Source: Bispira polyomma
Taxonomy: Eukaryota
Direction: 5' to 3'
DNA length: 64,000 nt
Assembly (NCBI GenBank): GCA_965649765.1
Contig: OZ287753.1
Location: forward strand, 73,532,001-73,596,000
Shown: positions 3,386 to 61,425 of the stretch, piece by piece
How positions within the stretch are numbered: the stretch's first letter is position 1
Layout of the letters: each line of letters opens with the position of its first letter
Notes under the pieces: model-generated
What the model saw: the letters and a program-made list of their open reading frames with translations, nothing else
Databases searched by the model: none
Told to the model about the DNA's origin: nothing
Translations under genes and position numbers: made by a program

Positions 3386-4419
3386 CGAGTTATTATTTTT
3401 TTTTTATATTTATATTTATATTTTTTTTTTCTTTTTCATATACAGATATATTTCACACATTGACATATACTGAGTGTTACACATAACAAAATAATGTTCC
3501 CACAACAAACTTTAAAAGGAAGAAAGACTTTTTGCATACAGATGTAATTGTGTACAGTACAATATTTAAATTTCTTGTTAATACTTGTTAATAATAGGTG
3601 TTGTGAAAAAAGATACACCATATTTTTCCTTTTATTGAAAATGCTTTCAGTTGAATTTATTTTTAACAAGTTCTTTTGTTTTGAATATGTACAGACAACG
3701 ACATTGATCTTTTGCCAGATTGCATCAGCGATACACATTTAAACCCGTCAAGTAGAACCCCTAGGGAACACAAAATTACTTCTATTTAACAAGGAATTCA
3801 AGGGGATTAATAGTAGTAGAGTAATGCAATAATTCTACACTATTCAAGAAGATAGTGTCGCCTTAAAGGGACCCCTAGAGCAAAACGTAGCAGCTTATTA
3901 GATGCTGACATGGTCACTATACTAAACAAAATTTGAAATGTTTTCAAAGGTTGACTTAAGAAGATATAATACCACTTCTGGTACCAATCAAGTAAACTCT
4001 TGTGTACTAACCTGGCCGCTATATGTTACTGCTCCAGCTCTTAAGCTTGTGTTGTTTACACTTCACAGAGCTGGCTCTAAACACTTGGTTAATACAACAA
4101 CCCACTAACTTTGTAGCCTGTTGTTGTAAAATGCCTCGACTGTCGATTAACAACAGCAAAGGCTGAGTATCTTTAGGCTTTCCAAAATGGTGCTCTTTCT
4201 TTGAATTTCTCAGTACGACTACCCCGATTCCAGGCTGTCCTTGACCTTCTATACCACTTCGAGGCTCTGCGGTTGGGGTTCGTACTAAAAGCCAAACCCC
4301 GGTTTCACTACACTTCTTCCCCTCATGAAAGGCCACATCAACAGCTCCTTGACTCTACATTATTTTACTTGGAAATACTAATTTTAAAGTTCATATAATT
4401 ATGTTATTGCAGCCACCTA

Positions 4420-4560
4420 GATTTACTTTTATTGCATTGTTCATAGATGATATAAACTTCATCTAAATTTACTTTTTATTTTACATTGTTCACAGATGAT
4501 CTAAACTTCATCTAAATTTACTTTTTGCTTTATATTGTCCATAGATGTTAAAATCTTCAC
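4420..4560. repeat. ~49-bp tandem repeat, ~3 copies
   Basis: ATTTACTTTT...ATTGTTCAyAGATGAT.TAAACTTCATCTAA recurs three times. Confidence 0.7.
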
Positions 4561-4801
4561 CAGGGTGATTACAATTTTAAATAAAAATAGCTATCTATAC
4601 TTTACAATTGTCCATAGCTTTCACCTGGGTGGTTACATACCTTCATCCACTACATTCTAGGCTGCAAGTTACACATTTTTCACCCTTACAAAATATACCC
4701 CCTGATTTTACTGAGGTTATCCCTAATCACCCTGGTTGCTCAGAACGCAGTACCATACTTGTTAAGTCGGTGCCGCTCCCTACCCCCTACAGATAGCCTC
4801 T

Positions 4802-5640
4802 TTACCTCAGTGAGTACAGCATTTTGGCGTTCCCAGAAGTAACACTGAGAACCTCCTCCACTGTACTCTGCTTTAACTCTGCTACCCTTCTTGCTATAAC
4901 TCCCACCCCGTAGCAAGTGTTGTAGGTACAGCTATAATGTTCTGGGGCTAACAGATGCGGGGAATCTGTTTCCAGCAGTATCTTTTCCAAAGGCAGTTCC
5001 TGTACTACCTGATCTACTTCGTGGTGTCGTGATGCACGCAATAATAACCTGGTAAATCCGAACAGTACCCAGGAAAATTTTCCTGCCATTTTTTCATCTC
5101 CTTCATTCCCCCTGTTATAACAATGTCTATGCACTTTATGCTTTTCGTCCTTTTCTTTAATTATGTCCGTCATCATGGCCAAACACAAATCACTGGCGTC
5201 CTGCGAGGTATTGAAATCTCGGCAATGGATCACTATCACCTTTGACCACAACTGTTTTTTGACATAAAATTAAGGAGTTCTCACAACAACTTGATTTGAT
5301 GTTCACGCCACCTGGAAAAACCATCGGTAAACTCCATTCCTATTTCACCAATCCCGACACATCGAAGATCCTTTTCAATGGAAGACTTTACAATCTCCAG
5401 CTTCTTTGGTGAAATAGACCTTGCTTGCTTTGGGTGCACGCCATATGTAAAGGATAGCCGATTGTCCCTCTTGAACACGATCATCTCTTCACAACTTGGT
5501 ATTTCAAAACAAAAGCTTGCTACTGCAGCTTTCAAGCGTACAGGCACTTCAGGCATAACACCCACCCGTAGTAAGTCGTCCAATCTGGTCATGCGTGTCA
5601 TTTCCTTAAGCTTGTCCATGTGCATATGCGAGTCAACAAA
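4802..5640 (-). pseudogene. TatD-family metal-dependent DNase domain, intronless, disrupted (C-terminal part of a larger element-borne ORF)
   Basis: FVDSHMHMDK, YGVHPKQA, CVGIGEIGMEF, VIVIHCRD, HRHCY, LPLEKILLETDSPHL and VTSGNAKMLY are all hallmark TatD motifs in order. In-frame TGA at 5281 and a frameshift near 5260. Confidence 0.88.
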
Positions 5641-7291
5641 TGGTATCTTTCATGACTCCGGACAGGTTTCCAAAGTTGACCTCCTTTGCTCCCAACTAAA
5701 CTCTGAGCAGGCTTTCCCAACATCTTTTATCCGAGGTGGCGGCTCTACTTTCTCAGCTGGAGGCTTCTGCAATACCTCTCTTTAAGATGGCTTTGCTTCT
5801 TCCCATGCTGTCTCCTCGTCCATGAAGATAATATGGAAGAACTGAGACTGTGTTAATTCTCCAGCCTTATACCGTCTTGACGTCTCCGAGGCAGTCATTG
5901 CAAAGGATGATTCACCTTGCTTGTACTTGGATGCCCCAGCTTCACTGTCATTAGGCCCAGCCTCAGGTTCTCCGTCACCTCCACATGGGTTACTGCAGAG
6001 TTTGCTTCTTTGGCTTCTGCATCTGCTTCACTGTCAGTTAAACCCAATGCCACACTTAGCTCACTGACAAGTGCATCAGTATCCATCAGCGCAGACTCAG
6101 CCTCAGCTGACGCACTTGGTCCTGGTTCTTTTTGCAGTGCTTGCTTTATAGCCTCTGCTACAGATTGTGTTAGTACTCTAGACAGCATGGATTTTGTCTT
6201 GCGAGTCTTGAGGTTGGCACCACTACCTTCTTTACAACAGTTGCCTCAAAAGGATCTTTTGTTTTAGCTGTCGCACCTGACATGTCTCCAATACGGACTT
6301 ATATTCAGAGTTTTTGGAGTTTTGACCTGTGCCTTGTCTTCCCCTACATGGTTTATCATGCAGGCTGCGACTCTCCAATGCACAAGCGAGGCTGTACAAT
6401 TTGGTGGACTAGGATTGGGAGTACACTTCAAATGACTTCCTGACAGCCAGAGTTCAAAATGATCCATTAGACGATAGTCGTCCTTTGATGTCTCGAGGTG
6501 CACTCGACAAGGATCCGGATACAACTTCTGCGTTTGAATTTTTTGAAGCAGTTCCTCATAGTTTCTACATTCCAACAGGTCCTGCATGGTTACCACGAAA
6601 CCTTCCAACGATGCCATCCTTTTGTCATCCGTCATTTCCCTTGCGGTATTAAAACCCTAAGGTAGGTGCTTCCCTATGACGTGTGCGCCTGAGGTTTTCC
6701 ACAACCCTTCATGAAACATGCAGGTATTTATTTCTTTTTAAAAGAGGGACCATCAGGCGTTTCCTCGTAAGGAGGACCTTTTCTCTTGACAGGCTGAACT
6801 TGGTTTCTGACAACATCCGACTCGCCACTTGGTCCTGTATCTTTCCCCACACCTTTTCTAGCTTTGGGTTTACACTTTGTAGGCTCGCCTGGCCCTGGTT
6901 TAGGTTTAAAATTCCTCTTCCTTGACCCAACGACTTGCCACTTTCCCTCAGCCCGCATTTTATATTGTCTTTTATCTTGCGGCTTTGGTGTAGGGAATAC
7001 CTTCTTATCTTGCTAAACATAAGACTTCCTTTTTCCAGCTTAAAACTCGGAATCCTCTTGTGCCGCTCAATAGACATTGCCTGGCGACACATTGCTTTTG
7101 CCCTTAGCTTTGGTTTGCACACTAGCTCCTGAGGTATGTCCCTGTGCTGGTTGCGTTTTTCTACTCTGGGTAGCCGACGTACTGGGGAGTTCTCGGTACT
7201 CTGGTGTTGGTGTCCCTAAAGCAGATGAAGGCGGGGCTGCTTGAACTCTAATATCCTTTAAACATCGTTCCATCAGCAGTGCCTGGTTAAT

Positions 7292-10200
7292 TGTAATTGT
7301 AATTAGACTTTTATTGTGCTTAATCTCCCCTTAACAAAGGGGACTCTAAGGCGCACCAGCACAAAAGACAGTTATCCAATTGCCAAAATCAAGGGACAGA
7401 AAAAAGGGTCAGCAACGTAGAGCGCGCCGGGGGATGATTGAAACTAAGGTGGATATGCTTTAGTGTACAAGTGGGTTTTAAGCTTCTTTCTAAAACAGGC
7501 TAGTGAGGGGGAAGCACGAATCACATGAGGGAGACCATTCCAAACAATGGGAGCATCAAAAGCAAAGCTGTGACCAAACTGTTTAACCGACTTTTGAGTA
7601 GATGAGTGGAACTTCGGAACAACAAGGAAATTACTACCACTCTGACTACGTCGGGTATTGTAGGAACTACTGTAAGTGGAAAGATATGGGGCAAAATACT
7701 TTGGAAACCCAGTGTGGAGAAACTTATAAACAAGTGTAGCTGTCTTAAACACTGAACGCTGTTCAACAGGGAGCCAATGCAATTTCTTCAGAACAGGAGT
7801 TATACTAGTGTATCGACTGGTGTTTGACACAATTCTAGCTGCACTATTTTGAATGCATTGTAATTTGTGTAAATTAAACTTTGAGAGACTCCTGAAAAGT
7901 GAATTGCAGTAATCCAGTCTACTACTGACAAAAGCATTGGCTACAAGTATAGAAGCATCATAAGTGAGAAACCGTCTGACACGTCTAAAGTCACGGAGTT
8001 GCATAAAACAGCTTTTGCAGACACTCTGAACGTGTTTAGAGAAAGAAAAGTCAGAGTCAAACCATACACCCAGGTTCTTGACAGAATCAGCTGGACTGAA
8101 AGGGCTACCCAAGATGTCAACTGGGAACAATGCTTTCAACTTATCCCTCTGTTGTTTTGAGCCAAAGATTATGAACTCAGTCTTATCGGGATTAAGTTTA
8201 AGTTTACCAGTTGACATCCACTCTTTCACATCGTCAAGGCACCTATTCAACTGTTCAAAGGCAGTAGATGTGTTTTTATGGGATAGGTGCACATAAATTT
8301 GGGTATCATCTGCATAAAAATGAAACTTTATACCTGTGTATTTGCCAATAACCAATCTAAGAGGGGAAGTGTATAATGAGAACAACAGAGGGCCCAAAAC
8401 AGAACCTTGAGGAACACCAAACAAGAGTTTACAAAGATCGGACAGAGTAGAGCCAATTTTTATCGACTGATAACGATCAGTTAAGTAGGAAGTGAACCAT
8501 TTAAGAACAGAGCCCCTAACTCCAAACCAAGTCTGAAGACAACTGAGAAGCGTGGAATGATCAATGGTGTCAGATGCAGCAGAGAGGTCAAGCAATACCA
8601 GGGCAGTAGGTTCCCCTCTTGACAAAGATAGGTGAACTTAATTTTTTATAGACAGGAGAGCTGTCTCAGTCGAATGACCAGTTTTATACGCAGACTGGTA
8701 TGGGTTGTCTAAGTCGTGGACAAAGATGTGATCTAACAGTTGCCTAGCAACCACGCATTCAACCAGTTTTGATATGAAACTAAGACCAGATACAGGGCGA
8801 TAATTCTTCAGGTCATCAACTGGAAGAGAAGCCTTCTTAATAAGAGGAGTAACCACAGCTGTTTTAAAACCATCAGGTACATGTCCCTCCGTAAGTGAGC
8901 AGTTTACAAGCTTTGTAATGGATGGTAGTAATATATCACTACATTCTTTAATAAGAGATGTTGGCCATGGATCCAACATGCAGGATTTTGTAGGCGAGTT
9001 ACTTATTATTTTACTAACATCATCTTCGGAGACTCTGGTAAAGGCAGTAATTTCTGGGGGATCAGAAAGAGGATGAACATCAATTTTAGTTCCAGAGACA
9101 ACAAAAGTATCTCTAATTCTCTTAATTTTGTCCAAAAAAAAGGAAGCAAACTTATGAGCTAGTGATTTATCCGAATTATGGGACGGGAGTGCCACATTGG
9201 TATCCATATTAAGGGTCTTGCGCAGTTCGTGCCACAGCTTCCTGGAGTTGTGACTGTTGTCAGAGATAAGCTTGCTGTAATACACCGACTTATCCTCGTT
9301 AACAAGTACATTGCACCGAGCAATCTGGCGACGTAGTCAACTTCTATTTAATGGATTCTTGGCCCTTCGCCAAGTTCTTTCATATTGGCGCCTGAGAGAT
9401 TTTGCCCGTCGGTAAGAATCAGAGAGCCAATGCACAGAATCTTTCTTTGACATTCTGGATACAAGTGGTGCATGCTTATCTAGTACATCACCCAAGTCAT
9501 GTATGTATTGTTCATAAAGTTTGGCTACAGAATTGGCAGGTGACTTAATAAAGGAAGTACTCTCAAGATCAGTACGGAGGTCAGACATGTTAATACGGTG
9601 GTACCTCCTATAATGCACTGTATTAGGTATGTGAGCCACCTGTGGGGGAGAGGCAATTGAGCATTTGACTAATGCATGATCCGATATGAAATCACAGACT
9701 TTGACATCCACAATAGCATCCTGATCACAAGGAGATAAAATAAGGTTCAGAATGTGACCATGCAGATGGGTAGGTTGTCTAATTGACTGTTTTAAATCGC
9801 ATGAATCAAGAAAGGTCATAAATTTATGACCGTCACCAACTGGTGCATCAACACGGATGTTAAAGTCACCACAGATATGATATGAACTGTTAATGGAAGA
9901 CAAGAAACCAACAAATGACATAAATTCTTCTAAAAATTTACAGGTACATGATCCTGGGGGGCGATAGACGCAGGCAAGCAACAGTGAGCGGCCATGAAGC
10001 CCAATTGATACCACCATATTTTCAAAGGACTGATAGACAGGAGAATCTATTTTATGTGGTTTGTAGGAGGCTCTGATGAAGAAACCAACACCGCCACCAA
10101 TACGTGAGGGACGAGGCGTTTGAGGAAACACAAAATCTGGAGGAGTAACAGACCGTAGGAAGCTATCCGTATCAGATAGACGGACATGGGTCTCTGTAAC

Positions 10201-11239
10201 ACAAAGGAAGTCGAGGTCGTGCGATGTCACAATATCTGCAAGGAGTGGACCCTTGTTCCTCACGGATCTAGCATTTAACACCCCGAGCATGACAGGACCA
10301 GGGTTAAGGGACACATCTCCGGCGAGTAAAAGTAACAAGACAAGACCTCTTCCATTAATGGTGGTAGGAAATTTACGACAAGAACAAGTGTATGAAAATT
10401 TTTTTGCAACTTTAGCCAATGAGGTTGCTGATGTATGAGCAACACTGTGATGCAACAACTCATACCTATGAGCCATAGCCACAGCAAACAGTGCTGAAAA
10501 AAGGACAACCCAAAGCAGAAACATGCCTAGTGAGGTTGTAGAAAAAGAAGAAGCCCTTAAACTGAACTCAACAATGGGGAGCCTCAGAAAGCTTGTCCCT
10601 ACAACTCACCGCACAATTCTTCGTCCCGTGGGCGACTCACGGGCACCCTAGCACCCCACACTATAGCCTGACCTTAAGCTAAGTACAACCACACCAACAT
10701 GTAGCAACAAAAGATGAGACAATAATTATATTGGTAATTTTAGAATATAGAACAACAAAATGAGACAAGAATCAATGTAAAAGGGGTAGAAAAATCATAA
10801 ATAGTAATAAATAAATGTACAGATATAGGCAAAAATTTACAATATAGAACAGCAAAATGAGACAAAAATCAATGTAAAAGGGGTAGAAATATCAAAAATA
10901 GTAATAAATAAATGTACAGATATCGGCAAAAACCACGACCTTATTACAAAATATTATGGTACAGTAGAGGACGGCCCACTCCCGCCAAACGAAGTGGGCG
11001 ATAATCGGGTACTATGGTTTCTTGCTAAAATTCACAATCCAAAACAGCAAAATTACTCAAATTTAATGTAAAAATGGTAGAAAAACATGAATAGTAAGAA
11101 ATAAATGTGGAAATATAGCCCAAACCGACGATCTTTTACAAAGTTTTATGGTGTTTTTTTCGTAGCGGTCTTCCCCCGGTACACGCTAATCATAATATTA
11201 AATGGTTCCACCCTGTTTGAAGGATGTAATACCCTGGTT
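7292..11239 (-). mobile_element. Near-intact single-ORF L2/CR1-group LINE (APE + RT)
   Basis: ORFs 10524-9337, 9285-8638 and 8625-7444 are one frame with two point stops. APE motifs (LNARSV, VTETH, VYRPPG, GDFN, SDH) and RT motifs (QSAY, DLSAAxD, VPQGSVLGPLLF, YADD). L2-type 3' stem-loop with (ATTACA)n tail at ~7290-7350; ATTAA duplicated at both junctions. Confidence 0.93.
10735..11140. repeat. ~97-bp repeats in LINE 5' UTR (two tandem copies plus one diverged copy)
   Basis: AATGAGACAArAATCAATGTAAAAGGGGTAGAAA...TAAATAAATGTACAGATAT at ~10759 and ~10856; diverged copy at ~11040-11130. Confidence 0.8.
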
Positions 11240-13699
11240 TTAATCACTTCTGGTCTTACCAGGCCGAATATCTGGGTCAGCATACTTATTACTGCCTCAT
11301 CTTCTTCAACTGCGGTGATGTTAAGGATACTTCAACAGGTTTTTGGTATGGTTTTAGGTGCCTTTGAAGCACCTGTGTTTTTGTTTCATCGGGTCCATTT
11401 GGTGCGACTGGGTTGCCCATGGTCCCCGGAACGACCCCTACCACCATACCTACCAGGACCAGTGTTAGAGGACCTTTCCCTATTCTGTTGTTCCCGCCCT
11501 GACTGAACGTTTGAACCAGCCTGCCCTCTTACCTGTCCTTGTTGCCTAGGTGCTATCTCATCTTCCTCATGACGGAGACCCACACTTGCATGGCTTACCT
11601 GCCTTGGTGCTCGCCCATCTTCCTTATAACGGAGACCCACACTCTCATGGCTTACCTGGGGAACGTCGTGACTTGCCCGTGGCCCCCTTGGTTCAGGTTG
11701 ATTCCCTCGCCCTCTACCTCTTACCTGGGGGTTAACACTACCTGGGTGTGAACGCCTACCGTACGGATGGTACTAAGGGCGATACCCTCCACTCCTGTAA
11801 CCACCAGAGTTGTCGTGTCCGCGGCTCTGACCTCGTCCTCTTCCTACTACACCTCTGCGGCCGGTGCCCCTTCGCTGACGGCCCCTTACAAAGGGAGACT
11901 CTCCCTGCGGCATCTGCAATAAGGCATTTCAAACAACACAACATGAATAAACAGTTAGATTACAAGAGCATTTTAGTAACATATGCTAAACCTTCACCTG
12001 AACCGAACCATGCAAGCTACATAACAAATTTTTAAGTAAGGTAATCTGCTAGATGACCAGGCCGCTTTCACTCTCGTCACTAATCCATTTGCGAGTACTA
12101 AGCTATTTGTTGGATCTTGTTGAAAACAAAAACAAAGAATCCAGTCGAGTTCTCTTGTATTAGGTTTCAAGAATGAGCTGGGGATTAAATATTTGCAAAT
12201 CAGTCGTCAATGTTTGTTTAAAAACTGTATCATGATGACATGTAAATCAAATCTAGCTTCATGGTTAGGTATATGGAAATGAACTAATAACCTCCAACTC
12301 CATAGGATAATCAACTTAGAGATGACAGTTGTTTCCGATAGATCCAGTACGTGATGACATCTTCAATGATAGACTGACATCCTGTTATAGATCCTTTGAT
12401 CAATCCACTATCTGGTGACATCTTCATGGATAGACTACCATCCTTTTATAGAAGAGGGAGGAATGTAGTGACACTCGTTATCGGCAATCTTCGCAAACTC
12501 TCGTGCTTTGCGAGACCTTAACGAGATGTCCTCGTTTACTAACGGGAGTAACGAGAGTTGAAGAAAGAGTAGGAGATTTTAAGGGAGAACCTTACGAGAC
12601 ACTGAACAATAAACATCTACCTGTGGAGAAATACAAGTCAGACCTAAATTCAAAAGGGTCATATGGATTACCCCAAATGGATTTAAAATTAGCTCAAAAT
12701 CTGAAACTGTATCTAGATTTGTTATGAAATGATGTAAAATTTGATATAAATTGCTCTATCAGCCATATTCAACAGGATGCAAAAATCAAAGGTGGCTGCT
12801 TAAATTGTAAAATTTTCCTTGGGCTGTAACACAAGGGCTACATCATTATCTCAAAAAAACTCTTTTACATTTATTCTAGATATCAGTCATTTAAAACAAG
12901 AGAAATGTAGATTTAAGATGGTGGATACAGCGGCCATCTTGTTTTTTTAAATGACTTCCAAATCAATAACAAGCAGGCTACTAATATAATACACATGAAT
13001 ATAAAATTTGGCAGGGCTAGCTGCAAATATTTTCACAGAAGAGCATCAGACACCATATTCTAAAATCATCTCTGGCAGCCACTTTGTGTTGGCTAGGGCT
13101 AAAAATCTTTACAAAATGACTGCAAAGCACAACACATGCACAGAGCTTATGATGAAAACAATGTACACCACATATTGTCGAAGGTAAACATCTTAGATTT
13201 TCGTTTAAGTGAAAGACGAACTTAGGCTCTTGAGATCCAAAGTCCCCCATCTTACCTCCCACACCATCAACATATCAACTAGTTTGAGCAAGCGCAAACT
13301 GGTTAAAACTTACCCAACCATATTCAGTAGAATAAAATCGAATAATTTTGAAATAGAAGCAGTATCAATAAAAGCTTACTGTAAAACAAGGAATTATATT
13401 GAACTCTGGCCTCAAACTTTTTCAAAATCTCTGACTTCAGCGAAGCTTGTAGTAAAAGTTGTTCCTTTTTGCATCCTATAAGTAGACAAAAGAAACAGGA
13501 GTTGATGTAGTGATAAGTCATCCCAAACATACAGGAATATTAGTTTGGTTCTGTTGTCTTGTTTGCACAAAACAAAAGAAAGATTATCATCATACAAAAA
13601 GCACCAATATATATGATCACATCAATTTACACAATTTAATCAGTATAAACAATCATGTTGACAACATCCAAGCTAAAAATGGATTCAAGTGTACTTGGC

Positions 13700-17260: not shown

Positions 17261-19385
17261 TTATTATTAATTTATTTATTCATACACAAGGTATAATATT
17301 ACAAATACAGAATACATAAATGTTTTCTCAACCAGGAACAAGGAAAAATGTTATTGAACACTATTTACAGTTTGGCAGTTACATTAAATTTTATACAAAT
17401 CTTCAAGATGTCCATAAACATTCTAACATACAAATCAATCTCAGTATAATTAAATTTAGTATGATTTCTCTCTTTAATACTAATGAGATCTCTAATATTT
17501 CCACATATTATTTCATCGTCTATGTTAATCTGAGAGTTAACAGGCTTGTCACTTATATTTTTAAATTCTTGAGCTGCTTTAAGAGCACATTTATAACTAC
17601 AATTAAGTTCCTTTGAAATTACATTAATATTTTTTCCTACATTGGAATGACTTCCATAAACAGCCAGTCTACCAGCAAGTTCTACACAATTGTTATCACT
17701 GGTCAGTATTGTATTTATAAATTTGTTGAATCTTTTATACAACTGCACATTAATTGGGACATCATTGCATACTAAATGTATGTATCTACTATGGGTTCTG
17801 TTTGACAGGTTAAATAGTCTTCTTATTGCTTTTCTCCATGCTGTATAAAATTTTAAAATTTCTCTGGATTCAAAATCCCATAGTACACAGCCATAGAGAG
17901 GCATACAATAACTTTTAAACAATTTGTATTTCACTGACACAGATGCATTTTGAAATGTATTAAGTATACTATTTAAAGCAACATTAAATGAATTTATAGC
18001 TTCATCTATGGTTTTTACTTTTGCATTTAAACCAATTATGTGACCTAAATGCACAGACTGTGAAACACATTTAATATATATATTATTATGACATACGCCT
18101 GCAATCATTTTCCCTTTTGAAGCTGGAAAGTGCAGAAGTTGATATTTTTCTGCATTAAACAACACATTATATTTATGTCCGAAAACATCACATATTTTAA
18201 GCATTTCTTTCATTGAAGACAGTGTAGGAGATATTAATACAGCATCATCAGCATACCCTAATCCACCCATAAACACATTTCCAATATAACAACCTAAACC
18301 ACTCCCTTTTAATTTTTCAAACATTTCATCCATATAAATTGTGAAAAGCACAGGGGATAGAATGCCCCCTTGTTTTACACCATTTGATATTTTAACATAT
18401 TTTGAAACATAATGGTCCCATTTAATTCTAATTGATTGATGTGTGTACATATAAGCCAGTAGGCGACATATAAGAGGACATAAACCTTTATCTACCAATA
18501 GAGAAAACAGTCTTGTATACTCTACACGATCGAAGGCCTTACTGGCATCTAACATCATTACATATACGTCATTCCTATTATTATTATAGTATTTGATTAC
18601 TTCATTTAACACAAATGTACATTGAGTAGTTGACTGTTTTCTTTTAAAACCAAACTGTAAATCACTTGATCTTAGAATAATTCTACTGCTGGATAAAATT
18701 AACAATTCAAGAACCTTACCTATGATGCTACTAAGGGCTATACCTCTGTAATTTTTTTAATCATTTAATGATTTCTTTCTATTTTTGGGGATTGGTATAA
18801 CTGTTGATACAAGTAGGTCGCCAGGTGAAAAACAATGCTTTAACATAGAGTTGTACAGTAAATTCAGATATACATATAATTTATGACAACCATGGATAAT
18901 GTTATCAGACCATTGATTAACTCCATCACTTTTGTTATGTTTTAGTAGTTTAACAGCATCAATAACTTCACTAACATTAAAGAAGTGTTGAAAGTAACAG
19001 CTATCTGAAGTACATTTTTGCACAATTGACTCAATTGAAACAAGAGACTGCATTACATTAACATTACTGAGTTATATAACTCTTCGTATTTATCAGAAAA
19101 ATGGTTACTTATATTTATACCACCAACAACACTATCTATATTGTTAGGATTAACTGATTTAACTCCTTTGACTTTTTTTACACTGGTCCAAAAATCATTA
19201 GTTTTATTGCATAAAACACATTCAGCTAGTTTATTTGCAAGAATAACTTCTTTGTCTCTCTTTACTTGCCTTAGAGCATAATGGTATTTGGCTCTAGTTT
19301 TCTTGCGAATCTCAGCGATCCAACCTGATCTTGGACAATCATTTTCTTTCCATAACCGATGCCAAAACATTATGACGCTAAACCG
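17261..19385 (-). mobile_element. 5'-truncated LINE, Proto2/RTE-X-like RT
   Basis: WHRLWKENDCPRSGWIAEIRKKTRAKYHYALR; QFGFK..ST; LDASKAFDRV; NGVKQGGILSPVLF; YADD. (TAAA)n tail near 17261-17280. Frameshifts and stops present. Clade assignment is from motif memory. Confidence 0.85.
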
Positions 19386-53035: not shown

Positions 53036-56000
53036 TGCAGAAACAGTCAGAGTATCATTTGAGGTATATTTATTTTCTGTACATTGTTAGTAAAGTGTAT
53101 ATATATACAAGTAGGGATAAAATAAAGGAAAATTTTTAAAAACCTGACAATTTTTAAAATCATCCAAGCCAAACTAAGAACTAGGGTATGGAAGAAGCAA
53201 AGGTAAGGGGAACAGCAGAAATGGCATCAGAATTCTGGTGAAGGTAGGACCATACGGCAGATGACCTCCAAAGGCCATGTGCCATAATGTTCTGAAGAGA
53301 TACGTTATGGTTGAAGGCAAACGTGGCGCCTGACCTTCTGAAGGTGTGAAAAGTGTGTTCCTTAAGTGAGATACCCACATGTGTGAGCACTGAAGCTAAA
53401 GCTGACCTTACATGTGATTCTATGACTGGAAAGTGAGGTTGACAAGCATGTACAAACAGTGGATGTTGAGGTGGCAAAGGTCTTGAATGTAGCAAGTTCT
53501 TGAGAGCGGAAACTGGACATAACGCCAAGTTTTTCAGTGAAGGAATTTGTATGACATGGAATTGTGACCTGTTTTGAAGGTTCTTAGCCCATTTAAGAAT
53601 AATGTGGGCTCCTGAGTGGCCAAATACAATATCTTTCCTCAGAAAATGACGTGTAGGGTCAAATTTTGACCTTGAGTGAGGAGCTATATTGGAGAGTCGG
53701 AGGAAACCGAAGAAGGCCATCATGAAGATTGCCCTATATAATGGTGGGTCACTCAGAATATCACATGCCTTGGATATGAGGATCAAATGGTGGATTTGGA
53801 AGATTCCCTTGGGGAGAGGTGTAAATGGTGAAGTATGTGATAAACTCCTTGTGAAAAGGGCCACAGCATTTTTTTTGAATATGTTAATGTCCCAGTACAG
53901 CTTGTTCGCAATGTGCTTTATAGCCGCTATATAATTATTGATCATGTTCACCGATGAACCTGTCTGTACTAGATATTCTAGGAAAGAAATGAAAGAGTGT
54001 GTGGTGACATTTTCTACACCAGCATAACAGTTAAAAGCAACAAAAGTTCTGAACTGATTGTTATAAGTTTGCTGTAGTCTTTGGTCTGAGAGCACTGTTA
54101 ATCCGCTGCCAAGCTGAAGCTGTGAACTTCTGAGTGAACTTGTTTGCACCTGGAATTATATATTAAAATTTAAGTTGAAATAATGTAGTGGAATGTCTAC
54201 CCATGTACATGAGTCCCTTATGATGTTAAACTGCTCTTTGTGTGGTGGTTGATCAGAAAATAATCTTGATAACAGGTCAGCTATAACATTCTTCTTACCC
54301 TCAATATGTCTAATCTCTACAGTAATGTCATAGGTTGCTGAGATCAACCAAATATTCCTTAAGCACAGTGCTAAAAAGTCATCCTTAGTTTTATTGGACT
54401 GAACTACTAGGACTACAGCCATGTTATCACAGTGTAAAACTATGCGTTTATGACTCCACTGCTCACCCCAGGCCCTAAGTGCCAGAAGAATGTTGAGCAT
54501 TTCCAAATGCACTATGGAGAGATTTCTATTATAAATGTTATAAAAAGGTGTAGCGTATATCTGATCGTTATATATTGCCCCCAGTCCCGTGAGGCAAGCG
54601 TCTATGAAAACCTCATTCTCATGGCTTTGTACTATGGGGTTGATATATGTGATACCGTTGTAGTTTGGAAGAAATTTGACAAACCAAAGTAAATCTGCTT
54701 TTATTTCCTCCAATATCTTGAACCTTTTGGCACCACTATTATTTCTAAATGCCATTAGTAATCTATTTATAAAAACTCGAGCCGGCTTAACGCATTTATG
54801 TATATAAAGTAACTTGCCTAGAATAGACTGAAATTTTGTACGGGATATCCAGGTCTTATTAATAATGTCTACGCATATGTCAAGTGTTTCTTTAATCTTA
54901 TCCGGTGTGATGCTTATGGTGCCTTTATCTATATCGATATCAATGCCAAGGCAGGTAATTTTTGAACTAGGCCTTGAAATTTTGTTTGGATTCAAAGGGA
55001 AACCCAAATATGTGACCAAGTCATGCACTGTGTCGAAAGCTGCATCCGCCTGATCCATAGTCGAAACACCGATATAATCGTCGATATAACAATACTTTAT
55101 GGTTGCTCTTGTTCAAGGTGTAAGCTATGATGTCAGAGTAATGCTGAAAAGCAGCCGAGCCGTGGACCCAACCAAAAGCCACCGCAGGATCAACGTACTT
55201 ATTGTTGTTGAAATTAATACCTAGTTTCATTGCGTCAACTGGGTCCACCCTCAGGTTGCGGAACGCGCGCAATACGTCCAGTTTAAAAATTTTGAGGTTA
55301 TGTGTAATTCGAATTTGTTCCACTGTATCATCTATGGTTGGAAATTTCAGTACGAAATCTATACGGTCAAATTTTGTTCTATCAACATTGTCATTAACCG
55401 AGTTATCTCGAGGATGTGATAAATTCAAAATGACTGGCCTGGTCTGGTAAGCAGTGGAGAGCAGTGAAAAGATTTGCTGGCAATTGTTGGACTAGGGCCT
55501 AACATTGCACCGCATTGTTTCTCTTTGGTTAAGTATTCCTCGATGGCTTCCTTGTGTTGAAGAGCAGAGTAATGGTTAACTGTTTCCTTAACTTGTAATA
55601 TGTCACTATTCTTAAGGGATAAGGGGAAACCGAACTTAATGTACTGAATGAGTAATTCATCAGGGTAATCTCTCAAGACGTCCTCCCAGGCTTGAATGTT
55701 CAAACCTGAGATCAAAGGAATCCTTGCACCCTTATAGTTAGGACATCCCGTGTCCCCAATGATGTGTGTTATGTTGTATGGAGGTAATGTGTATGGGGGC
55801 CCTATCCGGACCTATAAATTTGAAATTGGTTTTGGAAGTGGTCAAAAACCCTCGGTTCTTATGTGGAAAACTTATATCCCTAACCTGACTGTGGTGCACA
55901 GTATCCTGTGGTTCAAATTTTTGGGAATTATCGAAGAAGTCGTACGACGCCATCTTACCTTTATGACAGGATTTAACTGTCTTAACCATTGCTGGTTTGT

Positions 56001-59000
56001 CATTGCTGACTCTACACATTTTATTTTCATTCAATTCAAGTGACATCTTATCAATAATATCAACTATATACTCTGTGTAATTGACATTAAATCTATTTTT
56101 ACAGTTAGCGTCTCTCTGATAATCTTGCCAAACATTTATTGCTAACCTTTTATCCTCATCACTAACATTGCTCAACTCGTTTAAATTATCTCTGTATGCC
56201 AGTGTCTGACCAGTGTAAACCCGAGTGGAATAATATTCTATGATATTCATGCAACCCGCTGGGGGGTGTTTACATTTGAAATATTGTCCCCTTTGTCCAA
56301 TGACCCCATCCCCCAAGATATAAAATCCCGAAAGGTGAGTTTGATGGCACTGTATATATGCCACATGCAAGCTGTGGTTTCTATCTGGTATATAATATGA
56401 CCAACTGGTGACAGAGACAATTATTTCCATGTAAGACCCAACAGGGCCACCATATTCAAACTGTTTATCAACATTATGACAACTTAAAGTTTCCCTCTTC
56501 ATTACCGTTAGCTTCAATAAAATGTTTACCTGCTTCAGTATCACTTGCATAATCCGAATTGTAACTGTCGGGATAATTATGACTCTGTAAGTTATGTCCA
56601 ATGTTGTGGGAAAACTCGTTTCCCCTACCCGAAGCCGAGTTGTGAATACTACCTGAATGACTGTCAGTATCAAGACTGCACTCAGTACCTATGAACTGTT
56701 TAGGGTTGATAAAATCAAGGTGTTTATGATTGACACGCTTGACTGCCCTGTTACCGTTTATGACCCCTTGGTGGTGTTGATACAGGTCAGTATGTGGTAT
56801 GTGGTTTATATCATTATGACCACAATCGACTAACAATACATTTATAATTGCCTTGTTCCTTGACTCGAGTGGGATATTATCAGGTACACCTGTAAGAGAA
56901 ATATTATTCCAACAGTTACTGTTAACACCAGATTCTAGCTTATCCTTCACAACATCAACAGGATTATTATGCCTACATTTATTGTTATTACCAGATTCTA
57001 GCTTGTCCTTCACATCATTAGTTGGTGACTGACATTTGCTTTTCACACATACACTGCCCTTGGAATTAATATTTCCAACGGGTTCTAATATGTCTTTTAC
57101 AATTTTAACTAATGGTTGCTTATAACATTCGACTTTGTTATTTTTGTATAGTAACTTATTTTTATCTTTAACTTCTGCTAACTTATCTGTTCTCAGAACA
57201 CTGTTCCTATTCTCAAACATACTGTCCCTAACTTGAGTTCCTAGTCCTAGTAGTTGTCCGTCGTCCTAACGGCTAGACCCCTGAACCGGATCTGTCAGCT
57301 TGACTGAATTTGCTTTGTAACATTTAAATTCCGGATGGTATACGTCCTTGTGTAGAACCGTGGCGCAATGCCAACATACGTGCTTAAAATTACTATGGTC
57401 GGATTTATGTGAGCATTTGCCTGAGTTTTAAAGTTTGCATATCTTCATCGCCCCGTTGTTACTGGGGGTAGAGCTAGTGGTTTTGGAATTCATCATAGCG
57501 AGTTGGGAGGCACTGAGGCGGTTTAGGGCCCACTGGGTAGAGTCGCCCCAAGCCAGCCGACCTTCCTCGACCTCTGTCATGCTGGTGGCCCATGCTGTCC
57601 GCACCACCTCCCAGGGCAACGAGGACGCGTCCTTAAGAGCCAGGATAACTTGTTGGATCATATCTTTAGAAGTGGCCGGATCTGTAACTTGTAGTGTGAT
57701 GGACAACTGTCCTGACGCCCACTGGGGAAGTGATAAGTCATCGAAAAGTGGCTTTTTACGTAGGGAACCGCCCGTCCAGCCCTCATTCGCCCACCTGACG
57801 TTGGGGTTGGCAGTGGGAATATCAGTGGCATTAAATCTTCCGGACTTTTGACGTAAAGCATTCTTACCTTGGCTAAAAGCCATCTGTGCCTGGATGTTGT
57901 ATTCAGCGAGTCTTGCCTTGACACATCAGGAAGTGACTTGTGCACGTCAGCTCTAGGAACGATCCCATCTGTCGAATAAGCCGCAGCGGTGTGAGACCCG
58001 GGGATGTGTGTTGGTAGCTGATCCGTGGTTGCTACCGGCAATGTGAATTGTGGAGTACAACGCTCTGCAATTGTGTTGACAGGTAACCTGGCCTCATGGC
58101 CTGGTGGGGCTACCATAGGTACTGCCGAGACAGTCATAGATGAAGGCATCTGCGACGCAAAATGCTGCTGGGGTACATTCGCTGTCGGCGGATGAGTGCT
58201 CAGATCTCTCGCTTCTACACGTGCTAGTCTCTGACCTAATGCCGCGTTTGAGTCCTCCAAACGCTTCAAGATAGCTAGCATCTGGGAGCTATTGTCGTCG
58301 GGAACCAAAGGGTTGATAAGTTGGAATTGGGTGGTTGCAGGTGATGCGTGTTGTGAAGCTTGGGCGAACGGGCCGCTGAGATCAGTTACCAGACTGTCAT
58401 AGATGTGGCTATGCTTACCCGTCCGCTTTGAGGAGCTTTTCTTTGACGCTAACTTCTTGGCTTTTCCATCTGTAGCCGGAGTTTTGGTTGTGCGAGTTCT
58501 CCCCATAACGACGCACAGAACACATAAATATATATAGTATAGTTAAAAACAAATAAAAAGATAAAAAACTAAAATACTAAAACAGTGGAAAGCAACAGTG
58601 CCTTCATTAACCTGGCATATAAAAGAAAAAAGTCTGTGGACGCTGCATAACCAGAACCGAGCCGGTCCTATCAAGTCTAACTCTAGAGGTATCAGGCTTT
58701 ATGTTAAGCTTTAGTAAAACCCTTAAAATATTTTAAATCAGCTGTGGTAAAAGGGGAGGAGGTGGGAAAAAGTCTGTGTTCCTCTGTTGCTTTCCCTTTC
58801 CAAAATGGCTGGTCAATATTACCCCAAGGTTAAGTTTTTAGAGGGAATGAATCTGATTGGCTGTGTGCTAGTATGCCAGCCAAATAGTAGTGTAGCCCCA
58901 TTCGCTAGGGGTTAAGGTAAGGAGTAAAATTTCTAGTGGGAGAACTGAACTATCAGACCCCCGTTGGGTCGTGATGTGCAGTGTACCTACCCACCTAGAA

Positions 59001-59020: not shown

Positions 59021-59776
59021 CCGCGTTAAATAATATTTGCATAATGTTCACCTCTATATCCCACACGCTGTACCACACCAAAATATAAAGTGCTTTTAAA
59101 ATTACAATTTCAACAAAATCTTAGTGCAACTAGGTTATAAAAATATATATATCTGCATAAGTTTTTTTAGTTGTGAGATAAAATGAGGTTAAATGATAGA
59201 TTATAATAATTTTTTTCTGACTCACAGGAAACATGGAAGTCCATAATTAGCCAATGAAATGCTGTATTCTGTGGGAATATTAGTGCTTTTATGAAATTGG
59301 CCAATCAGAATCCACTTCCCACAGGGGATTTCCATTGAGTTATATATCTGAGGACCGAAACATTCGAAATCATTCTGAATTAAATTAAAAATGCTCCCGT
59401 TTTCAGGTGAAATCAATTAAATGTGGAATAACCTGGGCTTAAGGATGGAAGCAAATATCAGTTGCGTCATGCACGATAATCCAGAGGATTTTAAATAATA
59501 AAAGCAACAGATTTGTCTGGTTTGTTACTATTCCTTGTAAAATATGTTGTATGTTTTTTCTTGAACCATGTCATATTGGCTCCTCAGAAGATGATATATC
59601 AATAGGACTCCACAGAAATATTTGAATAATAACCAAAAAAAGTGACAATATAATTTCTCAAGCATTTGGGCGTGCAAAGGAGTGATTTTCCTCTCTGAAG
59701 CGAGTTGAGATTGTGCCCTAATACCAGTAGTTTTCTTGTTCAATGTATATTCTTTCTTCATGTTTTCCCTTTGTAG

Positions 59777-61425
59777 ATGTAGAGAAGAATAAAATACCCA
59801 TGCATGCAAGGGAAACCAGCAAGGGAATCACTGCAGACAGATCCCTGGGAGATGGCCCATTGTTGACTTCTGTACCATCACAATCGCCACGGAGAAGTGC
59901 AAGAGTCAAAGGAAAGCAGCCTTCGAATGATCCTGAATTGGTCCGGGCAGGCCCCATAGAAATGGTTTCCAAAAGGCAGCAAAAAGTCGGATCTAGAGAT
60001 GTTGTTGTAAGGGAGTTATTTGAGAAGTCAGAAGAAGCAAGAAGTATAGAAGCAGACAGGTATGATGATGAACCCCAGGAGTCGGAGGAATTATTGAACA
60101 GAACAGAAGAAAGTTTTAAAGTGGAAGATGTCACAGTGAAAAAAGAATCGGACGTTTCCGAAGTATCCGACCAACATGACACCAGCCATACAGGATGGCA
60201 TGGTCCTAACAATACTGTAAAAAATGATGATAATCTTAAAGATGATGTTAAGGATGAGAAGATTTTAAAGATTGCAGAACAATACAGTACAGCAGAGGTC
60301 ACAGCGAAAAGGGAATCAGGCTCCTCAAGAATATGTCAAGACGGATTGGGATCACGCGACATAAGCCAAGTGGTTTTAAGGAAGCGCAAGGGTCATTGTT
60401 TAAACTCACCTTTGAAGTGTAGACTATGCGCAAAGGCCTTTCCAAAGAAAGCCTACTTACGCAGACATGTCTTTAGCCATAACAAAGCAGACTACTTCCC
60501 ATGTCTGCTGTGTGACGAGAGCGGCACCTGTCGACCTTGGTTCGTGGAGCATTGGCGGAAAACACATGGCGAAAAAGAGAAGGCCCAAAGAGTGTCTGAC
60601 ACATTTAGTTGTACCAAGTGTGGAAAAATGTACTCATCGATGCACTCGCTGAGAAGTCACAAGCGCAAGAAGCACAGTAAGCAGAATAGCTTGTGCAAGA
60701 ATTGTGGGGTCACATTTCCTAGCCATATGGAAAAGAAGCAGCACAAATCGTTTTGCCACAAGCGTGAGAAGCACAAAAAACTGATCTCTTGCAATGTGTG
60801 TGGCAAATCTGTGTCGTCTGCACAAGACCATTTGAACATGCATGCGGGTGTGCGTCCGTACTTGTGCCGGGAGTGTGGGAAAGACTTCCTGAGGAAACAC
60901 GGGTTGGAGCGACACACCCAGACGGTGCATTCCGGCGGCGTAAGACCCTTTGTGTGCGAGACGTGTGGAAATAGCTACAGGGCTGTGTCCTACTTGAGGG
61001 TTCACCAGCGCAAACACACGAACGAAAAGCCCTACAAGTGCCAGAAGTGTGGGGCAAAATTTAGACTTTACATAGCCTTGCAGGACCATAGGCGCACACA
61101 TAATGGTGAACGACCATACAAATGCAAGGAGTGTCCAAAGGCATATAAGACCTTCAGCCAATTGAAGACCCACATTAAGATGCATTCCAGCATCAAAGAG
61201 CACAAGTGTTTGATCTGCAAATCCAAGTTTAGGCTGCCACATCAGTTGAGGGCCCATGTTGCCCGTATGCACGAGACCTTGAGCCAACTCAAGACCCACG
61301 CCAACTTTGCCAAGATGCATTCCAGCATTAAAGGGCACAAGTGTGTTATCTGCAAATCCAAGTTTAGGCTCCCACATGAGTTGAGAGCCCATGTTGCCCG
61401 GAAGCACACCGCAGAGGATTATTAG
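59777..61425 (+). CDS. C2H2 zinc-finger protein, terminal coding exon (~11 fingers); upstream exons not identified
   Basis: Open 560-aa frame with an acidic/low-complexity N-part followed by tandem CxxC...HxxxH fingers and TGEKPY-like linkers (HAGVRPY, HTNEKPY, HNGERPY). Pyrimidine-rich acceptor TTTCCCTTTGTAG ends at 59776; stop TAG at 61425. Confidence 0.9.

Follow-up and report, generated by a model that had tools for sequence, protein, structure and literature searches.

A stretch of 64,000 nucleotides from the genome of Bispira polyomma (GCA_965649765.1, contig OZ287753.1, positions 73,532,001 to 73,596,000 of the forward strand; hereafter the window, numbered from its first letter) contains the broken remains of a long gene for a TatD-type nuclease, close to sequences resembling the ends of retroelements. 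This locus raises the question of which element the nuclease gene belongs to and on which strand of that element it is encoded. Retrotransposons with long terminal repeats (LTRs) are usually described as gag-pol elements, sometimes with an additional env gene. A sequence-only reading of the window had placed the nuclease gene antisense to its element. We find that the gene, here termed ORF3 for its place among the open reading frames (ORFs), is the third gene of one Ty3/Gypsy lineage, where it lies between the integrase and the polypurine tract (PPT) with the 3' LTR.

ORF3 follows the integrase gene on the gag-pol strand

The TatD piece of the window was searched against the 1.035-Gb genome. 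At least 150 matches were obtained from 275 candidates, which confirms that the gene belongs to a multicopy retroelement. Several of these matches lie in open frames of 640-855 amino acids (aa). In three divergent copies, the pol ORFs of a Gypsy element are followed immediately, in the same orientation, by a TatD ORF of 750-850 aa. The element at locus L015 has the full series of gag, protease (PR), reverse transcriptase (RT)-RNase H and integrase (IN), followed by ORF3. Its Pfam matches occur in the order Retrotrans_gag, RVT_1, RT_RNaseH, Integrase_H2C2, rve and Integrase_p58_C. The PR ORF of L015 had no Pfam match; aspartic-protease matches were weak and were found in the pol of the element from ENA assembly ERZ27286572 only. 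The RT-RNase H region aligns to that of Ty3 (4ol8) with an E-value of 2.5e-69, Ty3 being its closest relative, and in this alignment the RNase H of the element keeps the D-E-D-D residues.

The terminal structures were analyzed in two copies. Copy e2 (C2:94.275-94.299 Mb), a fuller copy on another chromosome and the closest relative of the window copy, is bounded by a pair of LTRs of 328 bp, which share 96% identity. Its PPT, GAGGGGGAGAAG, stands before the 3' LTR and its primer-binding site (PBS), TTGGTACCAGAAGTGG, after the 5' LTR. Copy e1 (C6:54.48 Mb) shows a 3' LTR with its PPT, and no matching 5' LTR was found within 5.5 kb. Paired LTRs and a sense gag-pol, for which the sequence-only reading had suggested a search, are thus both present in fuller copies. 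The gene is neither single-copy nor devoid of LTR pairs and pol association, and its two halves co-occur in other copies as well.

Strand and position were tested by crossing the TatD matches with integrase matches, for which identity was measured to copy e1. When the integrase was at least 60% identical to that of e1, a TatD match was located 1.7-4.9 kb downstream on the same strand in 50 of 57 cases. For integrases of 50-60% identity, the same arrangement was seen in 6 of 18, and below 50% identity, where the matches represent other Gypsy lineages, in none of 21. The sole opposite-strand pairing consists of a neighbouring integrase match that faces a TatD match 6.3 kb away. ORF3 is thus a third gene in the "env position", encoded on the sense strand and specific to one lineage. 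The proposed antisense arrangement is not borne out: every informative copy has ORF3 on the gag-pol strand, downstream of the integrase.

The window gene is a decayed copy of ORF3 split by a LINE

In the window, all parts of the element are read on the minus strand. The order is integrase tail, pyrimidine-rich tract with CAG, ORF3 with an inserted long interspersed nuclear element (LINE), 3' untranslated region (UTR), PPT, LTR and a PBS remnant. The integrase tail (12032-12078, minus strand) comprises the last ~15 codons and the stop (..PGHLADYLT*), and blastn homology to e2 stops at 12078. Directly 5' of the ORF3 ATG lies a pyrimidine-rich tract ending in CAG (11914-11945, minus strand), which resembles a 3' splice acceptor by consensus.

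ORF3 itself extends over ~1,050 codons, from the ATG at 11913-11911 to the stop at 4804-4802. The start codon at 11913 had been placed correctly before. The 5' part (11198-11913, minus strand) carries a region rich in RG/RGG with short repeats and a helical motif, ..VISMLTQIF..EVIKTRV.HPSNRVEPF, that is conserved in the ORF3 alignment described below. It is 75% identical to the N-terminal ORF of e2, with 2 stops (tblastn). The decayed 3' part (4802-7290, minus strand) comprises a K/R-rich spacer, a module of finger and PPN..HWR block, an acidic linker and the TatD domain. Here, the C2H2-type finger and the helical PPN..HWR module map to ~6720-6300 and the TatD domain to ~5650-4802. Identity to the ORF3 of e2 is 73-88% in tblastn, with frame changes and in-frame stops. 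Pfam TatD_DNase matches were obtained on the minus strand at 4802-5251 (E 1.6e-20, 74.1 bits) and at 5281-5625 (E 2.5e-06, 27.5 bits). The sequence-only reading gave the domain order correctly, with the CxxxxC..HVIGKHLP finger, the PPN..LVHWR block and the HxH, GEIG, IHCRD, HRHC and ETDSP motifs of TatD; the metal-binding motifs are still legible in the decayed copy.

The two parts of the gene were searched as separate pieces, neither joined nor read through the breaks. Compared by blastn, e2 is 88% identical to window positions 3990-7290 and 90.5% identical to 11198-12078, and both blocks join at one point of the uninterrupted e2. Therefore, the pieces at 11913-11198 and 7290-4802 are one gene. 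The view that the scattered minus-strand ORFs represent a single decayed gene of ~1,050 codons, split by a LINE, is upheld by this continuous alignment. Relative to e2, the window ORF3 has at least 4 frame changes, and 19 stops were counted within overlapping tblastn alignments. As far as can be judged from its sequence, the window ORF3 is a non-functional pseudogene.

The LINE occupies 7291-11197 on the minus strand. It encodes an apurinic/apyrimidinic (AP) endonuclease and an RT and ends in an (ACAATT)n-like 3' tail; its ORFs at 7444-10524 (minus strand) gave Pfam matches to Exo_endo_phos and RVT_1. Homology to e2 breaks at 7290/11198, and these breaks mark the borders of the LINE. It had been rightly recognized as splitting the gene, while its extent had been given as 7292-11239. 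The 14 codons at 11239-11198, KTRVLHPSNRVEPF, had thereby been assigned to the LINE; they are codons of the gene and are present in e2 too.

We also inspected public DNA unitigs, which come from three DNA-type runs of one study and may derive from the assembled sample itself. A single unitig spans 11162-11296 with 0 differences. Unitig depth is 10^4-10^6 in the LINE versus ~10-100 in the flanks, a jump of ~1,000-fold or more, and within the LINE it climbs steadily toward the 3' end. The family of the nested LINE is extremely abundant, and the depth gradient fits many 5'-truncated copies.

The window copy is a 5'-truncated element with its own LTR

Downstream of ORF3, the termini of the element were identified on the strand of the gene. 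The PPT, gaggggaagaag (4313-4324, minus strand), was read directly and adjoins the start of the LTR; e2 and e1 have a like arrangement. The LTR (3988-4312, minus strand) is ~325 bp long, starts with TGTAGTG and aligns to both 328-bp LTRs of e2. Directly after it stands a PBS-like remnant, ttggtaccagaagtgg (3972-3987, minus strand). Window positions 3972-4308 align to the 5' LTR and PBS of e2; the 16 nt at 3987-3972 are identical to the PBS region, and homology ends beyond them. PPT and LTR (4324-3988) therefore have the same sense as the TatD gene, both being on the minus strand. Genome-wide, the LTR of the window copy has ~35 further matches, some of them paired at distances of 3.6-12 kb. Genome matches of the 5'-LTR type begin at position 73-74 of the query.

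Two contexts meet at the single LTR of the window copy, that of a 3' LTR (ORF3 and PPT) and, on its other side, that of a 5' LTR (PBS). This is the appearance expected of a fragment of a tandem array or of a 1-LTR-circle-type junction. No gag, PR, RT or remaining IN sequence of an intact copy was detected by tblastn elsewhere in the 64 kb. With only ~15 integrase codons, ORF3 and one LTR, the window copy is not a complete member of the Gypsy family. Window positions 3972-12078 (minus strand) represent a Ty3/Gypsy LTR retrotransposon that has lost its 5' part and is dead.

The opposing LTR belongs to a second element

The 3' end of a different, non-autonomous LTR element, here called element B, adjoins the truncated Gypsy fragment tail to head. 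The B fragment (12079-12652, plus strand) consists of an ORF tail (..SLIHLRVLS..), a 3' UTR, a PPT and an LTR, and it has a ~470-bp deletion at 12143 in the 3' UTR. Its PPT, AGAAGAGGGAGGAA (~12449-12462, plus strand), was placed by alignment to two fuller B copies, and its LTR of ~190 bp (~12463-12652, plus strand) by alignment and by self-comparison of these copies. At least 40 copies of element B are present in the genome, at 78-92% identity. The two fuller copies, L033+L031 (C9:46.99 Mb) and L032+L030 (C11:25.74 Mb), have pairs of ~195-bp LTRs that are 5.4 and 6.4 kb apart. The internal ORFs of element B encode a coiled coil, then a finger (CFIRDC..HMKKHVIRKHL) and a PPN..SLIHWRV block like those of ORF3. 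Neither a pol nor a TatD ORF was present among the ORFs listed in the two fuller copies.

The PPT and LTR-like end that had been reported at 12450-12635 is thus real and lies on the plus strand, and it is part of element B, not of the TatD element. The claimed antisense orientation fails because the LTR used to orient the gene belongs to this unrelated, abutting fragment. The LTR of element B begins with TGTAGTGA, as does that of the TatD element. Because both LTRs start in this way, B may be mobilised by the TatD-carrying Gypsy lineage.

ORF3 combines a TatD barrel with a finger/helical module

Eleven ORF3-type proteins were aligned. In this alignment, a variable RG-rich N-terminus is followed by a conserved helical motif (DE.VV.ML..., HP.NR.EPF, LLMERCLRDIR) and a K/R-rich linker. 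Next comes an invariant C-x4-C...H-x4-H finger with a helical region that ends in PPN..SL.HWR and GEE. An acidic linker, a G.PY..EW motif and the TatD domain complete the protein. The TatD domain of an intact copy matched PF01026 with 132 bits (cut-off 27; E 2.9e-38) over profile positions 1-248 of 253. HxH, GxGExG, IHCR, HRHC and ETDSP are kept in all full-length Gypsy ORF3 proteins aligned, and with them the metal-binding residues, i.e. HxH, the Glu of GxGExG, the His of IHCR, the His of HRHC and the Asp of ETD. An AlphaFold2 (AF2) model of the domain has a TIM-barrel fold (mean predicted local distance difference test, pLDDT, 93.4; predicted template modelling score, pTM, 0.91). When this model was compared with the Protein Data Bank (PDB) by Foldseek, the top 17 matches were all TatD proteins. 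The TatD barrel of ORF3 is apparently active, with a complete active site.

Within the ~570 N-terminal residues of ORF3, no known domain was detected with Pfam. The finger/helical module of 139 residues was modelled with a pLDDT of 91 and a pTM of 0.85, from nine sequences only. Foldseek against the PDB gave nothing below an E-value of 4 except a generic C2H2 finger. A wide VIA-align search gave a best Z of 3.3, and an ESM Atlas shape search gave TM-scores of at most 0.35. An Atlas feature search with the whole ORF3 returned only generic TatD clusters scoring <0.8. Going by the model, the module folds confidently and is without a recognisable structural relative. A profile of the module found 228 cluster representatives among 1.84 billion proteins. 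In some of these the module is joined to TatD, and in some it is present in several copies next to ankyrin repeats. It occurs 3-5 times in the very large proteins P0041, P0044, P0027 and P0033 (1,560-2,990 aa); ankyrin repeats stand beside it in P0041 and P0044, the two that were scanned. Since it is repeated in large ankyrin-repeat proteins, the module exists outside retroelements. The genomic context of the module-only proteins P0019 and P0018 was uninformative.

Three ORF3 proteins were scanned for membrane segments and charge. No transmembrane-like segment was found, the maximal 19-residue Kyte-Doolittle mean being 1.1-1.2, and the isoelectric points are 8.4-9.5. An envelope protein was considered and ruled out, since ORF3 is basic and without a membrane segment.

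Copies were also compared with respect to selection. Between subfamilies, synonymous sites are saturated (proportion of synonymous differences, pS, at least 0.75), and the proportion of nonsynonymous differences (pN) in the TatD domain is 0.24-0.40. This comparison among copies, which had been recommended beforehand, indicates that the TatD barrel is conserved despite saturated synonymous sites. Within subfamilies, the ratio of nonsynonymous to synonymous substitution rates (dN/dS) is mostly 0.37-0.67, with one pair at 0.94. Two processes are mixed in these values, namely selection in lineages that are active and the neutral decay of copies that are dead.

ORF3 elements in other assemblies and their relation to TATDN2

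The same arrangement was found outside this genome. ENA contig ERZ22147071 encodes gag, pol, IN and an ORF3 of 1,017 aa (44% identity) in the same order. A contig of a different ENA assembly, ERZ27286572, again has the order gag-pol-ORF3; its ORF3 is a distant one and starts before pol ends. In Mytilus edulis (GCA_905397895.1, CAJPWZ010000873.1; L055:11241-12596), an ORF of 451 aa follows a Gypsy integrase on the same strand. It carries the finger, SLLHWKV and the full set of TatD motifs, and is not among the annotated genes there. The closest named integrases are those of Mytilus, Saccostrea and Batillaria, at ~50% identity, and the related Saccostrea element has no ORF3.

Among named proteins, the best matches of the ORF3 TatD domain are vertebrate TATDN2 proteins, at 25-29% identity and in the barrel only; outside the barrel, no similarity to TATDN2 was found. 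A maximum-likelihood tree was rooted on bacterial YcfH-like TatD and included two vertebrate TATDN2 sequences. TATDN2 and the finger-TatD proteins form a clade apart from bacterial YcfH-like TatD (support 100/99), and the finger-TatD proteins form a clade that excludes TATDN2 (support 97/94). The latter clade carries a specific insert after the IHCRD motif. Judged from this tree, with its two vertebrate TATDN2 sequences, the ORF3 TatD domain branches as the sister group of vertebrate TATDN2 and does not fall within it. This placement, together with the lack of N-terminal similarity, speaks against a processed pseudogene of a host TATDN gene, an outcome that the sequence-only reading had allowed for.

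The distant finger-TatD proteins P0046 and P0139 have changes of E to D, H to Y and D to N at catalytic positions. P0046 (L035:1573-4041) has a tandem second gene at 7453-9954, and P0139 is located on L036. No pol gene was called near either within the flanks shown. P0046 and P0139 may be inactive or domesticated derivatives.

Other features of the window

Three further features lie outside the ORF3 element. An ORF run at 53181-58506 (minus strand) has a tyrosine-recombinase match (Phage_integrase, E 6.7e-05) and an RNase H-like match (RVT_3), and looks like a DIRS-type retroelement. Another RT ORF (RVT_1, E 1.4e-23) is located at 17365-18705 (minus strand), and an ORF of 560 aa with multiple C2H2 zinc fingers at 59743-61425 (plus strand).

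A possible role of ORF3 and its alternatives

Taken as a whole, the findings are probably best explained if the window holds a fragment of a dead Gypsy element and if ORF3 is a nuclease, expressed from spliced RNA, that would act on RT intermediates of the element or on R-loops. Like the env of retroviruses and errantiviruses, ORF3 probably has a spliced subgenomic RNA as its messenger. A pyrimidine-rich tract and CAG|ATG precede ORF3 in three divergent elements: the window copy, e1 and the ENA element encoding P0001. A spliced subgenomic mRNA is suggested because this acceptor-like site precedes the ORF3 ATG. The finger/helical module and the RG-rich part would bring the nuclease to nucleic acid. 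There, TatD would trim or remove hybrids or single strands that arise as intermediates when the element is reverse-transcribed, or else R-loops at target sites. [quoted passage not shown] The nuclease would supplement the intact RNase H of the element, not replace it. A TatD domain that stands in for a lost RNase H was ruled out, as the D-E-D-D residues are retained.

Several points weigh against this explanation. In more distant lineages, whose predicted ORF3 starts were set by a prokaryote-style gene caller, no acceptor-like motif was observed ahead of these starts. The putative substrate is extrapolated from TATDN2, to which the domain is only 25-29% identical. With its RNase H apparently intact, the element has no obvious need of a second nuclease for hybrids. 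The relation to TATDN2 is drawn from a tree without TATDN1, TATDN3 and invertebrate TATDN2. Moreover, the catalytic motifs are degenerate in the distant finger-TatD proteins P0046 and P0139.

Other explanations have to be weighed against the same data. It had been proposed that a retroelement captured the nuclease and expresses it opposite to its LTR-driven transcription, and a genuine PPT and LTR at ~12449-12652 do face the opposite way to the TatD gene. However, this LTR is that of another family, with at least 40 copies, LTR pairs of its own and an internal ORF. The TatD gene has a PPT and LTR downstream on its own strand, all fuller copies have it in sense with gag-pol, and 50 of 57 related integrases have TatD downstream on the same strand. 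We therefore give this proposal practically no credence. Alternatively, ORF3 might be a passenger, either a transduced host finger-TatD or TATDN2-like gene without a role, or a set of processed pseudogenes or a host family near Gypsy insertions. TatD is otherwise a family of cellular enzymes, its closest named relatives here are vertebrate TATDN2 proteins, and on one ENA contig two finger-TatD genes stand in tandem without a called pol gene nearby. Yet ORF3 and its catalytic motifs are kept across subfamilies with saturated synonymous sites, the gene occupies the same position in three other assemblies, including that of Mytilus edulis, and the positional association is 50 of 57 versus 0 of 21. 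Its place between the integrase and the PPT/LTR is that of an element gene and not of a random retrocopy made by a LINE, and we consider a passenger highly improbable.

The nuclease could also be directed at the host. It might rid the cytosol of unproductive complementary DNA (cDNA) or hybrids and thus evade innate sensing. Its substrates might also be the precursors or targets of small RNAs, or it might act against elements that compete with its own. The conservation of ORF3, its unimpaired active site and its modules for nucleic-acid binding agree with such a role no less than with one in replication, and the intact RNase H makes the latter non-compulsory. A non-autonomous element and ankyrin-repeat proteins have the finger/helical module but no TatD, which suggests that it serves in targeting or interaction. 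However, nothing indicates a host target, dispersed transposon copies give no defence context, and the argument is purely inferential. We regard a host-directed nuclease as unlikely, and prefer an enzyme that serves the element's own reverse transcription. A further-reaching version of the preferred explanation is put forward tentatively, as a possibility that we hold with some reserve: a metazoan Ty3/Gypsy lineage, present at least in this genome, in Mytilus edulis and in three other assemblies, may long have carried a TATDN2-like hybrid or 3'-5' nuclease, joined to a previously unrecognised zinc-finger/helical module for nucleic-acid targeting, as an essential, spliced gene in the env position.

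ORF3 among known retroelement genes and TatD enzymes

Extra enzymes have been taken up by other LTR elements; dUTPase is found in some Gypsy and retroviral lineages. In the plant Tat/Retand elements, the long regions between pol and the 3' LTR contain extra ORFs (PMC11963269). Both cases resemble ORF3 in that LTR elements gain and keep accessory coding; they differ in protein families and hosts, and neither is a TatD nuclease. A close parallel in layout is offered by Ty3/Gypsy (Metaviridae) elements whose env position holds a third ORF, such as insect errantiviruses and env-carrying metazoan Gypsy elements (PMC13524379). They share the order LTR, gag, pol, third ORF, PPT and LTR on one strand, and their third ORF starts just after the integrase. 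In contrast to env, ORF3 encodes a soluble, basic zinc-finger/TatD protein, a putative nuclease, that has no membrane segment and is not a fusion glycoprotein.

Vertebrate TATDN2 is like ORF3 in having a long N-terminal region of low complexity and a C-terminal TatD barrel (PMC10711561). It differs in that it is without the finger/PPN..HWR module, whereas ORF3 is intronless, multicopy and located inside an LTR element. Bacterial TatD/YcfH and human TATDN1 and TATDN3 (1yix, 6l25, 1xwy, 2y1h, 8efg) have the same fold, with Foldseek E-values of 1e-12 to 3e-17 and TM-scores by target of 0.69-0.84, and share the metal-binding motifs with the ORF3 TatD domain. However, these are stand-alone cellular enzymes of ~260-300 aa with 15-30% identity to it.

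The searchable literature, which does not cover Repbase and subscription journals, yielded no account of an LTR retroelement with a TatD gene. The term TatD was absent from the retroelement papers listed by one of the literature searches. The only trace is a figure of the giant-squid Hox cluster, in which a TATDN2 label stands among transposon-type genes (PMC6962438). ORF3-type ORFs are probably annotated as host "TATDN2" genes elsewhere.

The window copy itself is inert, an ordinary dead transposon fragment, and the interest lies in its family. With a TatD nuclease that is conserved, apparently active and placed in the env position, the repertoire of retroelements would gain a new accessory enzyme. 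It leads to a testable hypothesis, in which a second nuclease would act on RNA:DNA hybrids or 3' ends, in retrotransposition or in host evasion. If ORF3 has indeed been kept for long as an essential gene, it would represent a new class of retroelement accessory enzyme. Such a history would leave room for an exchange of nucleases between cellular genes of the finger-TatD/TATDN2 type and the elements.

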